From NCBI GenBank assembly GCA_002269645.1, contig NIVC01003507.1, forward strand, positions 1 to 64,000: a stretch of 64,000 nt of DNA. The letters run 5' to 3'. Made by a program: the position numbers and the translations under genes. The stretch is from Macrostomum lignano (Eukaryota). Positions 28,701 to 34,700 of the stretch are shown in pieces. Below the pieces are notes generated by a model. The model saw nothing but the letters and a program-made list of their open reading frames with translations. It made no database searches and was not told the DNA's origin. Each line of letters opens with the position of its first letter. Position 1 is the stretch's first letter.

Positions 28701-31700
28701 TAGTACTTTTGTACATCCTCAGAGCAGAGTGGTAGTTCTCCCAGTCCTCTGGAGTATTCGAGCCGTTTGCGAGGCGTTGCAGTCGGCGGGTGTTTTTCTT
28801 CATGCGAGTGAGCTCTTGACTCCACCAAGGAGAGTATTTCTTCCTGCAAAACAGCTTAGGGGCGTTAGCGCGTATGGCGGTGTTTAGGATCTCAACGAGG
28901 GAGTTGCACCGATGCTCAATGCCAGGGAGATCCTCGCTGGAGTCCGGTAAGTTGGCTTCGGTCAGGAGTTTTAGCAGGTCTCTTCGAAAACCTGTCCAGT
29001 CGGCCTTTTTCAAATTAAGGCGGTCCCGGTTCTCATGACGGGCTCCGACGGAGCTGATGCTGTGCTGAATGTACGAGTGGTCGGAAAGCGATGGGAGGTC
29101 ATCCCTAACCAGCCAGCTGTGGACCTGATTGAGGGCGTTGTTGGAGACGAGAGTGAGGTCGATAACCTCACGCCGATTAGAGACAATAAATGTGGGTTTG
29201 CTGCCTCTGTTGCAAATGTGTAACGAGGAGGAGTTAATGAAATCAATTAGTAAGTCACCGCGCCTGTTAGTATCGCTACTAGACCAGGCAGTGTTGTGGG
29301 CGTTAGCATCGCAGCTAACGATAAGCTTCCGATCCTGGAGATTACAGAAGTCCGCCAGCTCCTGCAGGAGGAGGGAGGGACGTCTTCCTGGATGTCCAGG
29401 TAAGCGGAAACGAAGGTCAAGTCAAAGACTGAGAAAGTACAGTCATGCACAAAAGTAAGTATACCCCAAGCAAAAATTGAGAAAAACGGTTATAATTTCT
29501 GAACCGTCAGCTCTATTACGACAAAACTGCATCACAATGATCCTTATTGACTGGCGCTTATTTTGACACATCAAGCTTTGAAAAACTCTTTGTGGCTAAG
29601 GAGCTGTGGCCAAAAATGCTCAAACACACCTGTGCAAAAGTAAGTACACCCTGTCTTAATACTTTGTAGCTCCGCCTCGTGCAGCCACCACAGCCAAGAG
29701 CCGCTTGCGGTAGCCATTCACCAGCGCAGCGCACCTCTCAGCAGGCACTTTCTGCCACTCCTCGATGCAGAATTCGGCCAATTCCCACAGATTCTTCGGC
29801 TTCCTTGCGTGAACCATCTTCTTGAGATCCGTCCACAGCATCTCGATCGGATTCAGGTCAGGGCTCTGGCTTGGCCACTCCATGACCTTGATGCGCCTCT
29901 GCTGCAGCCATCGCCGAGTTGCAGCGCTCGTGTGCTTGGGGTCATTGTCCTGCTGCAGTGTCCAAGCTCGTCCAAGACCGAGGTCATGCACTGATGACTG
30001 CAGGTTTTCGTCAAGGATCTGCTGATACACGGCCGAATTCATCTTCTCGGTGATGTGCATCAGCCTGCCGGTGCCAGCAGCTGCAAAGCAGACCCACAGC
30101 ATGATGCTGCCGCCTCCGTGCTTGACTGTCGGCTTCAGGTGTTTCTGCTCAAATGAGGTGTTCGGCTTGTGCCACACGCACTGTTTCTCATTCCTGCCGA
30201 ACAGCTCAATCTTGGTTTCATCAGTCCAAAGCACTGACTGCCAGTAGCTGTCCGGCTTGCTCAGCATCGCATTAGCGAACTGCAGCCTGGCATCGCGATG
30301 TCGCTGCTGCAGCAGAGGCTTTTTTCTTGGAATGCAGCTGCGGAGGCCCACGCGGTTTAGGGCTCGGCGAACAGTAGTCCTGTGCGGCAATAAGCCAGCT
30401 GCATTCAGCATCTGCTGCAGCTCACCTGATGTTGCATTCGGGTTTTGGCTGACCTCTTGCGTGAGTTTGCGCAGCGCGCGAGCTGAAATTTTGCTCAGCC
30501 GGCCACTGCGAGGCAGAGATGCTGTGGTGCCATGCTGTTTGTACTTTGCGATGATGTGCCTAACCGTTGATACATGCACATTGAAGGCAGCAGATATCCG
30601 CTTGTAGCCATCGCCACTATTGTAGGCTGCTACAATGCGATTTCTTAACTGAACTGATAGCTCCTGGCCTCTTGGCATTGTCCTGGCGTGTATCAAGTCA
30701 ATGACGAAGCGGCTGCAGTGCACATGAGCTTTATAGTAGCATGAAAACCAGTAGCTGAGCCGATTGAGGGCAGGGGCGAGCAGGACTAAAGTCGCTGGTG
30801 ATGTAACAGGCAGTGAGGCGGCTGGCAATGTACTTGTGGTGGCTCGCATTTGCACAGAGGAGGTTATACTGGTAGTGAAGGGCAGGGTGTACTTACTTTT
30901 GCACAGGTGTGTTTGAGCATTTTTGGCCATAGCTCCTTAGCCACAAAGAGTTTTTCAAAGCTTGATGTGTCAAAATAAGCGCCAGTCAATAAGGATCATT
31001 GTGATGCAGTTTTGTCGTAATAGAGCTGACGGTTCAGAAATTATAACCGTTTTTCTCTATTTTTGCTTGGGGTGTACTTACTTTTGTGCATGACTGTACA
31101 CATGTCTTTAGAGCAAAACATTGGCATAATAGTGGCCGGGAGGTCGTTTTTGACGAGGGCGATAGCCCTGGGGGTGTCGTTCGCGCAGAGGTACAGAACC
31201 TGATAGCCTGGCGGCAGGCAGGTCGGCTTCCCCTTGCGGGTATACGGTTCCTGAGTAAGGTAGATGTCAACTTCCTTGTTTGCAAAGGTGCCTGAAAGGT
31301 TGCTAGATGCTGCAAGGGCGTGGTGCAGGTTGATCTGAATAATGTGCAGGTTAACAGGTTGGTTCGCCGGCGGCGGATTATTTATTTGGTTGCTGGTGGC
31401 AGTGTCATCATTGGGCTGGCCGTTAAGGTTCGCCCTCAGCGCCCCGCTCCTAGTTTGGCACGGGGTTGGGAACGGCATTACTCGTTCCCAGAGCTATCCG
31501 AGCTCACGGACTCACCTCGGCGCCGATCGCCGGCTGGACGACGCCTGAGCAGCAGGTGGAAGACGATCTTCCACGCTCCGATGTAGGCGGCAAAATCGTC
31601 CTTCTTGAGGGCGTCTTCCCACTCCGCGGAGAAACCCATGTACAGGGTCTTGCCGGGAGCGCCTTTTGCCGGAACCTCCTTGAAGGCCCGGATACCGTCC

Positions 31701-34700
31701 TGAGGTAGGTCGGGGTTTTTACTGAGGAGCCGGGCGCGGATCTCCTCGATGCTTCTCGAGCCGGAGTAGAAGGCTCGGTAGCGCCTGCAGGGCGGCGGTG
31801 GTCGGGCACGCTCAACGACCAAAGGCGGGAGGGCGGTCGTGCAGGTGTCCCAGGAGATGGACACCAGGTTAGCCAGCGCGAGCTCGAGCTGGGCTTCGTC
31901 CTTGAAGGCGAGGATGACGCTGCCGTTGGCGTTTCGAATCGCCTCGACTTTGATGTCGAGGGCGTCGTTTTCCCAGAGGAAGTCATCAATCATGCCGATC
32001 GATGCTTCCATCTGGGCGGTGGTCAGCGTACCGCTAGCCGCGCGCACGCAGATTTTAAATTTCGGCTCCGTCGCCACTTTGGCGTACGTGCCAGCATTGG
32101 CCTCCTTTGGCCTCTTGGGGTCCAGCGAGGGGTCGGTACGCTCGTCTGGCTGCTGCCTTTTCCGCTCAGAGCCAGCCGAGGTTTTATCATCGCGCCTGCG
32201 ACGGTTGACGACCTGGAAGCCGTCATTTTGAGACGCCCCTGTAGCGGGGGTAGAGGTGGACGCACCTGAGCGAGGTGCGGAGGTTTCCGCGGGATTCGCG
32301 GCAGAATCAACCTCCATGTTGGAGGGTTGGGGGATTGACGGACCCCCGGCCGCGGGAATTGACGGCTCCCGAGCCGTGTCAGGTGGTTTTGATTTATCCA
32401 TGCAGAGTAGGCTGAAATGGAAAAACTGAAATTGCACAGAGGAGGTTATACTGGTAGTGAAGGTGGAGCTACCCTCTGCCACGGTAAACAGCAGAGAAGC
32501 TTTGGGTTGCCGTCTTATCCCAGGATTGCTCCCAGGCGAGGCTCCGGCAGGCCCCCGGTCCACACTCTGCAAGATCAGGGGGCGGGAGGCCGGCTGCGGG
32601 CTTGGGACACAGGCGCCAGGTCGAGTTGACAGCCGACGCCCGAGCCCTCCCCCACAAGAGCGGCCCTCGAGAACCCGTGTGGTACCAGTTGCAACTAAGG
32701 GCTGTCGATGGGTAGTTGGCGCTTAGCCAGCAGCCAACTACTTAGCAGCCACCTGCCCCGCAAAAAAGCAGCAGGGGGGATCCGTCCCCCACCAGCAGAC
32801 CAAGACGAGGAAGCTAGCCGCTTCCACGCCAGGCCAGAACGAAAAGGAGGGGGAAGAGCTTCCTCGAAAAACGAAAAGCTGGCGGATGTCAAAGAGTCCC
32901 TCGGTTTAAGTTGCCGTTTGCCCCCTGACTAGATAGCTAACAAGAGTGACCAGATAAGCTAGCGAGAGTGACTAGATAGCTAACCAAAGTGACCAGATAC
33001 GCTATCGAAAGTGACTAGACAGCTAACAAGAGTGACCAGATAAGCTATCGAGAGTGATCAGATAGCTAGCGAGAGTGACCAGATAGCTACCGAGATTGAC
33101 CAGATAAGCTATCGAGAGTGACCAGATAGCTAACAAGAGTGATCAGATAGCTATCGAGAGTGATCAGATAGCTAACAAGAGTGACCAGATGAGCTATCGA
33201 GAGTGATCAGATAGCTAACAAGAGTGACCAGATGAGCTATCGAGAGTGATCAGATAGCTAACAAGAGTGACCAGATGAGCTATCGAGAGTGATCAGATAG
33301 CTAACAAGAGTGATCAGATAGCTATCGGGAGTGATCAGATAGCTATCGGGAGTGATCAGATAAGCTATCGAGAGTGATCAGATAGCTTACAAGAGTGACC
33401 AGATGAGCTATCGAGAGTGACCATGTAGCTAACAAGAGTGATCAGATAGCTACCGAAAGTTTAGGGCAACTAGGAGTGCAAAGTTATTTACAAGGAGGCG
33501 TATTTCTGTATCCTGAATTTTACGGTACTACAAGCTTAATTTTTGTTTGTGGTTGGGTATTTCAAATTTATAAGCTAGGGTTTATAGAAAGAGTGCTTCT
33601 AGTCTAGATCGCTTGAGTCGACAGTGTACACTTATTTTGATAATCCTCATCGATTTTTATTTCAACAACTCCGCAGCCCAGTGGATCTCCGACGTTGACT
33701 GTTTTCTAAGCCTGCACGATCGCAAACTGTGCGTACTGGGCTTCTGCACTCTGCTCACCTGCCCGCCAGACCGCATGCCCGCCTGCTTTGCGGCCGCTCT
33801 GCCCAGCCTCCTGCCGCAGTTCCTGGCCCTGTTCCACGGCTTGAAGGCCGCCTACCAATTGAAAAGCCGCCTAGAGAACGAAGCCGAGGACGACGACGAC
33901 GGCGACGGCGATGCCGAAGCGTCTGGCGAGGACGACAATTCGGCTGTTAGCGGCGACGGTCTCAATGCTAGTAACGGCGGCGGCAAGCAGCGCGGCGGCC
34001 GGCGCTCCAACGGTAAAGCCGACGCCGATGATGAAAACAAAGAGCTGGACAGCGACGAGGACGATATCGATCCGGAGCAGGTTGGCTTCTTCATTTCTAT
34101 TAGTTAGTTAGTTAGTTAGTTGATTAGTTAGTTAGTTAGTTAGTTAGCTAGTTAGTTGGTTAGTTAGTTAGTTAGTTAGTTAGTTAGTTAGTTAGTTAGT
34201 TAGCCAGTTAGTTAGTTAGTTAGTTAGTTAGTTAGTTAGTTAGTTAGTTAGTTAGTTAGCCAGTTAGTTAGTTAGTTAGTTAGTTAGTTAGTTAGTTAGT
34301 AAGTTAGTTAGTTAGTTGATTAGTTAGTTAGTTAGTTAGTTAGTTAGTTAGCTAGTTAGTTGGTTAGTTAGTTAGTTAGTTAGTTAGCCAGTTAGTTAGT
34401 TAGTTAGTTAGTTAGTTAGTTAGTTAGTAAGTTAGTTAGTTAGTTAGTTAGTTAGTTAGTTAGTTAGTTAGTTGGTTAGTTAGTTAGTTAGTTAGTTAGT
34501 TAGTTAGTTAGCCAGTTAGTTAGTAAGTTAGTTAGTTAGTTAGTTAGCTAGCCAGTTAGTTAGTTAGTTAGCCAGTTAGTTAGTTAGTTAGTTAGTTAGT
34601 TAGTTAGTTAGTTAGTTAGCCAGTTAGTTAGTTAGTTAGTTAGTTTGTTTGTTTGTTTGTTTGTTTGTTTGTTAGTTAGCCAGTTAGTTAGTTAGTTAGT

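Follow-up and report, generated by a model that had tools for sequence, protein, structure and literature searches.

Two transposable elements of different classes in the flatworm Macrostomum lignano, a Tc1-like DNA transposon and the long interspersed nuclear element (LINE) in which it is nested, share an exact stretch of 32 nucleotides (nt). They lie in a 64,000-nt piece of DNA, hereafter the window, which covers positions 1 to 64,000 of the 94-kb contig NIVC01003507.1 in assembly GCA_002269645.1 (Mlig_3_7). The 32/32 match is real and chance is excluded as its cause. How, then, did a cut-and-paste element come to carry the same 32 letters as the retrotransposon around it? We favour, at about even chances, a one-off, local and non-reciprocal copy between the nested elements, as opposed to a module carried independently by each family. 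That the two copies are identical, where they lie, that their elements are nested and that these share no further sequence are all direct observations, and these are described first.

The 32-mer and the elements that carry it

The 32-mer occurs twice in the window (Table 1), both copies reading TTGCACAGAGGAGGTTATACTGGTAGTGAAGG on the plus strand. The original prediction, made from the letters of the window, had noticed this pair and judged it too good for chance, and it was right on both counts: a search of the window and a self-BLAST of 25.5-33.5 kb against the whole window each recovered the 32/32 pair, the latter without any longer or weaker extension, while the 32-mer was found in none of 100 dinucleotide-preserving shuffles of the window. 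When the Tc1 is compared with the window, only the 32-mer stands above chance, the next longest match being 13 nt and shuffled Tc1 sequences reaching 12-15 nt. The flanks are unrelated, again as predicted, with local alignment of the 200-nt flanks of both copies giving nothing but chance matches of 7-10 nt. Beyond the 10-mer AGCCACCACA, which lies at a different offset, there is neither diverged homology around the 32-mer nor any extension of the terminal inverted repeat (TIR) of the Tc1 into it. No match to the 32-mer, to the 30-mer at the start of the first LINE open reading frame (ORF1) or to the Tc1 inner repeat was obtained in metagenome and prokaryote genome collections, and a full-text literature search for the 32-mer sequence gave no match either.

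That a fragment of some third dispersed repeat was inserted independently into both elements is scarcely credible. The 64-kb window holds no third copy, even with up to 3 mismatches allowed, and no sub-string of the 32-mer of 11 nt or more elsewhere; neither copy is surrounded by target duplications or terminal features, and two independent insertions with identical 32-nt boundaries are improbable in themselves.

A distance of 1.55 kb separates the copies, which share their orientation and belong to one nested pair of elements. Because both elements read on the minus strand, both copies fall in sense 5′ non-coding sequence. The original prediction had described the placement correctly, down to the class of the two elements. 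Between the Tc1 copy and the inner edge of the 5′ TIR there is 1 nt, and between the LINE copy and the ORF1 ATG, downstream of it, there are exactly 30 nt.

Table 1. Coordinates in the window of the nested elements, their parts and the two 32-mer copies (ORF, open reading frame; UTR, untranslated region; IR/DR, inverted repeat/direct repeat)
Feature	Position	Strand	Details
32-mer copy 1, sense CCTTCACTACCAGTATAACCTCCTCTGTGCAA	30850..30881	-	Tc1 nt 216-247; 171 nt upstream of transposase ATG
32-mer copy 2	32432..32463	-	LINE 5′ UTR nt 463-494; 30 nt upstream of ORF1 ATG
Tc1-like IR/DR DNA transposon	29440..31096	-	1657 bp; intact
Tc1 TA target duplication	29438-29439 and 31097-31098		flanks the element
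Tc1 5′ TIR	30883..31096	-	214 bp, ending at Tc1 nt 214; core AAAGTAAGTACACCC at outer and inner ends
Tc1 3′ TIR	29440..29653	-	214 bp; 3 mismatches to 5′ TIR
Tc1 transposase coding sequence	29656..30678	-	340 amino acids, intact; ATG at Tc1 nt 419
LINE, full-length, interrupted by Tc1	25914..32925	-	7.0-kb insert; 5353 bp without Tc1
LINE 5′ UTR	32402..32925	-	about 523-524 nt
LINE ORF1	31478..32401	-	307 amino acids; ATG at 32401 = LINE nt 525
Two TTTCAG motifs right after the 32-mer in the LINE	32412..32431	-	nt 495-500 = 32426-32431; nt 509-514 = 32412-32417
LINE target-site duplication, left copy TGACTAGATAGCTAAC	25898..25913		16 bp
LINE target-site duplication, right copy TGACTAGATAGCTAAC	32926..32941		16 bp, perfect

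The Tc1 interrupts LINE ORF2 at a TA within the endonuclease part (CSKDMC/T) and has the orientation of its host; taking it out together with one TA restores the frame CSKDMCTFSVF found in intact LINE copies. Each of its TIRs bears the core AAAGTAAGTACACCC at both ends, that is, as an outer and an inner direct repeat, and 2 nt separate the stop codon of the transposase from the point where the 3′ TIR ends inwardly. The transposase has the catalytic triad D153, D244 and E279 (DD34E) and precomputed Pfam matches to PF25787, PF01498 and PF13358. With its TA duplication, its long TIRs with direct repeats and a transposase made of helix-turn-helix and DDE_3 parts, the element belongs to the Tc1-like (DD34E), IR/DR type of the Tc1/mariner group. 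Its closest retrievable relatives are L002, with 64% amino-acid identity, and L003 and L004, with 59%; their common architecture has a stop codon abutting the 3′ TIR and 175-195 bp between inner repeat and ATG. More broadly, the nearest transposases come from fish and amphibian Tc1-like elements and from unassigned metagenome contigs, at 51-64% identity.

The assembly record lists the transposase ORF at coordinates identical to those of the window, as a protein of 424 amino acids (P0001; 29656-30930, minus strand) whose ATG lies inside the 5′ TIR, at 30930. The first 84 residues of P0001 are translated non-coding sequence, including 10 residues read through the 32-mer, and the frame of this short peptide is also open into LINE ORF1. 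AAAA/GTAAGT, which fits the splice-donor consensus GT[G/A]AG perfectly, is present in each direct repeat of the 5′ TIR (30883-30912 and 31071-31096, minus strand); the inner occurrence is 15 nt upstream of the pyrimidine-rich 32-mer.

The host is a non-LTR (long terminal repeat) retrotransposon made of a 5′ UTR, ORF1, an ORF2 with APE endonuclease, reverse transcriptase, RNase H and a C-terminal CCHC motif, and a (GTAA)n 3′ end that reads GTAGTAAGTAAGTAA. It is identified as a LINE by its target-site duplication, its simple-repeat 3′ end, its ORF1 and ORF2 domains and its multicopy nature. Its relatives were compared at the protein level, as UniProt/UniRef gene models: P0132, nearly identical to the LINE protein, carries PF14529, PF00078 and PF00075, and the LINE proteins reach 100% identity to M. 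lignano UniProt entries. The family is both abundant and young, with dozens of M. lignano UniProt models that are 93-100% identical. When set against intact copies, ORF2 of the present one shows a frameshift of 1 nt, placed within a C/T-rich stretch of the endonuclease region (29360-29380, minus strand); either a genuine mutation or an error in the long-read consensus could account for it.

A proposed local copy and its alternatives

The course of events that we infer, with its mechanism and direction, is as follows. The LINE would have inserted into an intronic 43-bp satellite, and the Tc1 would then have entered a TA in ORF2 of that same LINE. Subsequently, during repair or replication of the Tc1, a polymerase would have come off its template where the 5′ TIR has its inner edge, taken up the LINE 5′ UTR 1.55 kb away, on that duplex or its sister, for about 28-32 nt, and then gone back to the Tc1. 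The product would be a templated insert, also known as filler DNA. A break or a stall would be plausible at the inner TIR edge, since it is the place of the inner direct repeat, bound by transposase, and the end of a possible 214-bp TIR stem. The patch would require no function within the Tc1.

A local template switch fits better than a module carried by each of two families on its own, because one element is nested in the other, the patch is single and sharp-edged without flanking homology, and its site in the Tc1 is the TIR edge. The insert is identical to nearby sequence of the same chromosome (32/32, in the same orientation), as a templated insert should be. Breaks induced by Tc1 are documented to acquire inserts of this kind, copied from sequence close by (PMC4490562), and filler DNA is common in Ds elements (PMC3260210). 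Local templated repair had been among the explanations put forward in the original prediction, and it proves to be the best anatomical fit: the Tc1 lies within the LINE copy that bears the second 32-mer, 1.55 kb off, and the sharp-edged patch abuts the inner edge of a 214-bp TIR.

As to direction, copying from LINE to Tc1 is probable, because the position of the sequence is special in the recipient Tc1 and unremarkable in the LINE. The same direction had been proposed on other grounds, namely that the LINE copy could pair with the adjacent GCAGAG-GGTAG. Short complementary blocks do exist there, but the fold is no better than that of shuffled sequences (z = -0.63 and -0.16), so that the hairpin argument fails and the direction is now favoured mainly by the site in the recipient. 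A second, weak hint comes from L002, in which the inner repeat is followed by CCCTG/TGC; the Tc1 of the window minus some 28 nt would read CCCTG/TGCAA. The TGCAA end of the patch may therefore be native to the Tc1 and have served as microhomology. If CCCTG/TGC is native, as the comparison with L002 suggests, a single junction would share 5-8 nt of microhomology with the LINE (CTGTGCAA). The ancestral TIR/UTR junction of the Tc1 is predicted to have read ...CACCCTGTGCAAATGCG....

Several points weigh against this reading. The DNA of each element was compared in one copy, and the 32-mer may also be present in others. The junction microhomology is putative, leaning as it does on the comparison with L002. 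A double template switch across 1.55 kb exceeds the usual range of polymerase theta, whose typical templated inserts copy sequence close to the break (PMC4490562), and the insert is without the accompanying deletion of classic abortive gap repair. Finally, the gene model P0153 (UniProt A0A1I8FTL3), from another LINE copy, tracks the LINE 5′ UTR peptide and then, from 2 nt into the 32-mer (window 32461-32466), continues as ELAGGASQNDG, with ELAGG encoded nowhere in the window. Some LINE copies could thus differ within the 32-mer, which would allow the reverse direction.

It might also be that the capture is family-wide, the Tc1 family consensus already holding an older 32-mer derived from the LINE, or the LINE family holding one derived from the Tc1. 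The present nesting would then be a coincidence, the outcome of local hopping, or the product of a Tc1 bias for the LINE. We consider this unlikely. Random insertion of a Tc1 into a member of so abundant and young a LINE family would not be rare, and the pair is noticeable only when both copies fall in one window, which amounts to a selection effect; moreover, neither the transposase ORF nor the TIRs nor the 1657-bp length of the element is disturbed by the patch. However, nesting within 1.3 kb of the donor is predicted by a local event and rarely by a family-wide feature, and nothing like the 32-mer is present in the three Tc1 relatives L002, L003 and L004 (59-64% amino-acid identity). The 5′ UTRs of these relatives, in which a clean 32-nt gap was looked for, are too unlike that of the Tc1 to be aligned. 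Neither M. lignano proteome has a second annotated copy of the Tc1 transposase, and none from this species appears among the top matches of a transposase search; the transposase is the sole member of its cluster, on a single contig, and its next relative is 64% identical, which suggests that the Tc1 family is very low-copy. As for a bias towards the LINE, Tc1 integration requires only a TA, and we know of no homology-guided targeting among the properties of Tc1.

Could the duplicate have been written by the assembly instead? During consensus building or short-read polishing of a repeat-rich long-read assembly, 32 bp might be introduced into one of the sites. Two published accounts describe the M. 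lignano genome as highly repetitive and hidden polyploid, with redundant scaffolds (PMC10468722; PMC8629364), and the 1-nt frameshift in this LINE copy is itself a possible consensus error. Even so, such an artefact is improbable, given that a clean 32-bp insertion of non-adjacent sequence is atypical of long-read consensus errors and that both contexts are otherwise coherent, with the TIR pair, the ORFs and the target duplications all intact.

The LINE leader and the surrounding DNA

Directly after the 32-mer, the LINE carries two TTTCAG motifs, both of which fit [T/C]TNCAG, the published trans-splice acceptor motif of M. lignano (PMC8629364). A GT[G/A]AG donor was looked for in the LINE 5′ UTR and none was found. 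In UniProt models of other copies, a LINE-derived exon begins at nt 501 in at least six cases and at nt 515 in at least three, and because these exons start there, the sequence just downstream of the 32-mer is, to judge from the models, typical of the LINE family. In a representative library, every model retrieved with the LINE 5′ UTR peptide has a LINE exon that opens past the 32-mer; as the LINE gene models begin downstream of it, they are uninformative on its presence in other copies.

These features raise the question of a functional module shared by both elements, with the 32-mer acting as the branch-point/polypyrimidine region of a (trans-)splice acceptor, as a small-RNA target or as a protein-binding site. 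The LINE copy is indeed pyrimidine-rich and is followed by a TTTCAG of the acceptor type, the 5′ UTR is free of an upstream GT[G/A]AG donor (PMC8629364), a predicted exon starts right after the 32-mer in at least six LINE copies, and its length is near that of one PIWI-interacting RNA (piRNA). A shared function is nevertheless very improbable. In the Tc1, the 32-mer runs into ATGCGAG, so that neither the acceptor AG nor TTTCAG was copied, and a copy that ends before TTTCAG is what would be expected of an incidental patch. The distance to the ATG is 171 nt in the Tc1 versus 30 nt in the LINE. No stabilised fold emerges in the LINE and Tc1 contexts, with z-scores against shuffles of -0.63, +1.26, -0.16 and +0.53, and there is no Rfam match to the 32-mer at E<=1. 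The sequence differs from the 35-nt spliced leader, and it is not conserved in the Tc1 relatives.

A more specific version would make the 32-mer the branch-point/polypyrimidine part of a spliced-leader (SL) trans-splice acceptor. ORF1 of the LINE would be translated from long read-through transcripts, and a promoter-less Tc1 would have copied the signal for processing its transposase message out of transcripts driven by the LINE or by the gene. To this we assign a very small probability. With three relatives devoid of similar sequence, no RNA family or structure, and no splice-acceptor motif after the Tc1 copy, no support was found for three other proposals of the original prediction, namely a family-wide module, homology-biased insertion and a shared small-RNA or protein target.

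Two candidate sources of the 32-mer were rejected. The M. lignano SL, CGGTCTCTTACTGCGAAGACTCAATTTATTGCATG, is not identical to it (PMC8629364), and no known RNA family or tRNA fragment was found to match.

The LINE splits a 43-bp satellite, which it entered in phase with a perfect 16-bp target duplication, and which extends over 24166-25913 and 32926-33460 (about 41 and 12.5 units). This array of satellite and LINE lies inside an intron of a plus-strand importin-beta-family gene ending at 36087; a chimeric query of ORF2 and importin exons returned no importin paralogues.

Elsewhere in the window, a WD40-repeat gene has exons at about 40055-40453, 41468-41893, 42597-42815 and 43495-43731, and its introns are filled with different minisatellites (40440-41130, 41180-41370 and 42880-43330). 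The unit of the first of these contains CAG/GT, creating many alternative donor-like sites. A long tandem array with a 33-bp unit occupies 38615-39940, with QFRCDRQLYLV repeats in one frame. On the minus strand at 50478-51596 there is an intact-looking 372-amino-acid mariner-like transposase ORF that is not on record as an annotated product. Microsatellites are extensive at 8218-9074, 42009-42602, 34100-34500 and 23279-23429, and include (CAGA/GACA)n with CLSV-type pseudo-ORFs, (TTAG)100 and (CTA)50.

Templated insertions in known systems

If the local copy is the true explanation, this locus offers a clean natural case in which a long TIR has a templated insert exactly at its inner edge and the template can be traced 1.55 kb away in the host element. 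It would then serve as a marker of the pickup of foreign sequence by cut-and-paste elements, and of template switching during repair or replication in the germline or stem-cell lineage of a flatworm. The general picture would be left unchanged. Were the patch fixed across the Tc1 family or used in RNA processing, it would document the transfer of a cis-signal from a retrotransposon to a DNA transposon, and under the SL-acceptor reading, the borrowing of an RNA-processing signal across classes in a trans-splicing animal.

The closest parallels are the templated inserts made by polymerase theta at Tc1 and Mos1 breaks in Caenorhabditis elegans, which are likewise short, identical to nearby sequence, linked to the Tc1 family and associated with little or no flanking homology (PMC4490562). 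Those inserts are found at empty excision sites, with small deletions and a template very near the break (PMC4490562), whereas that of the window sits within an intact element at the inner TIR edge, its template is 1.55 kb off, and no deletion is visible.

The filler DNA of Ds elements, attributed to abortive gap repair, also consists of foreign sequence copied by template switching beside the terminal repeats inside a cut-and-paste element (PMC3260210). Classic cases of filler DNA are non-autonomous deletion derivatives, in contrast to the Tc1 of the window, which keeps its full transposase ORF and normal length. Deletion derivatives of P, MuDR and mariner are further examples of abortive gap repair.

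Transduplication by Pack-MULE and Pack-CACTA elements similarly places captured non-self DNA between the TIRs of a DNA transposon (PMC6379663). Pack elements, which are non-autonomous, capture host gene fragments that run to hundreds of bp, while here the capture is of 32 bp, the donor is a transposon and the carrier is nested in its donor.

Replication template switching by fork stalling and template switching/microhomology-mediated break-induced replication (FoSTeS/MMBIR) produces short templated insertions from sites kilobases away. The usual signs of FoSTeS/MMBIR are complex rearrangements and microhomology at each of the two junctions; of the latter the present insert has a weak hint, at one junction. 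The insert nonetheless resembles such events in its kilobase-scale distance, direct orientation and sharp edges, and in the plausible stall at a structure-prone inverted repeat. Set beside these systems, the 32-mer patch would add one more case to a type of event already known.

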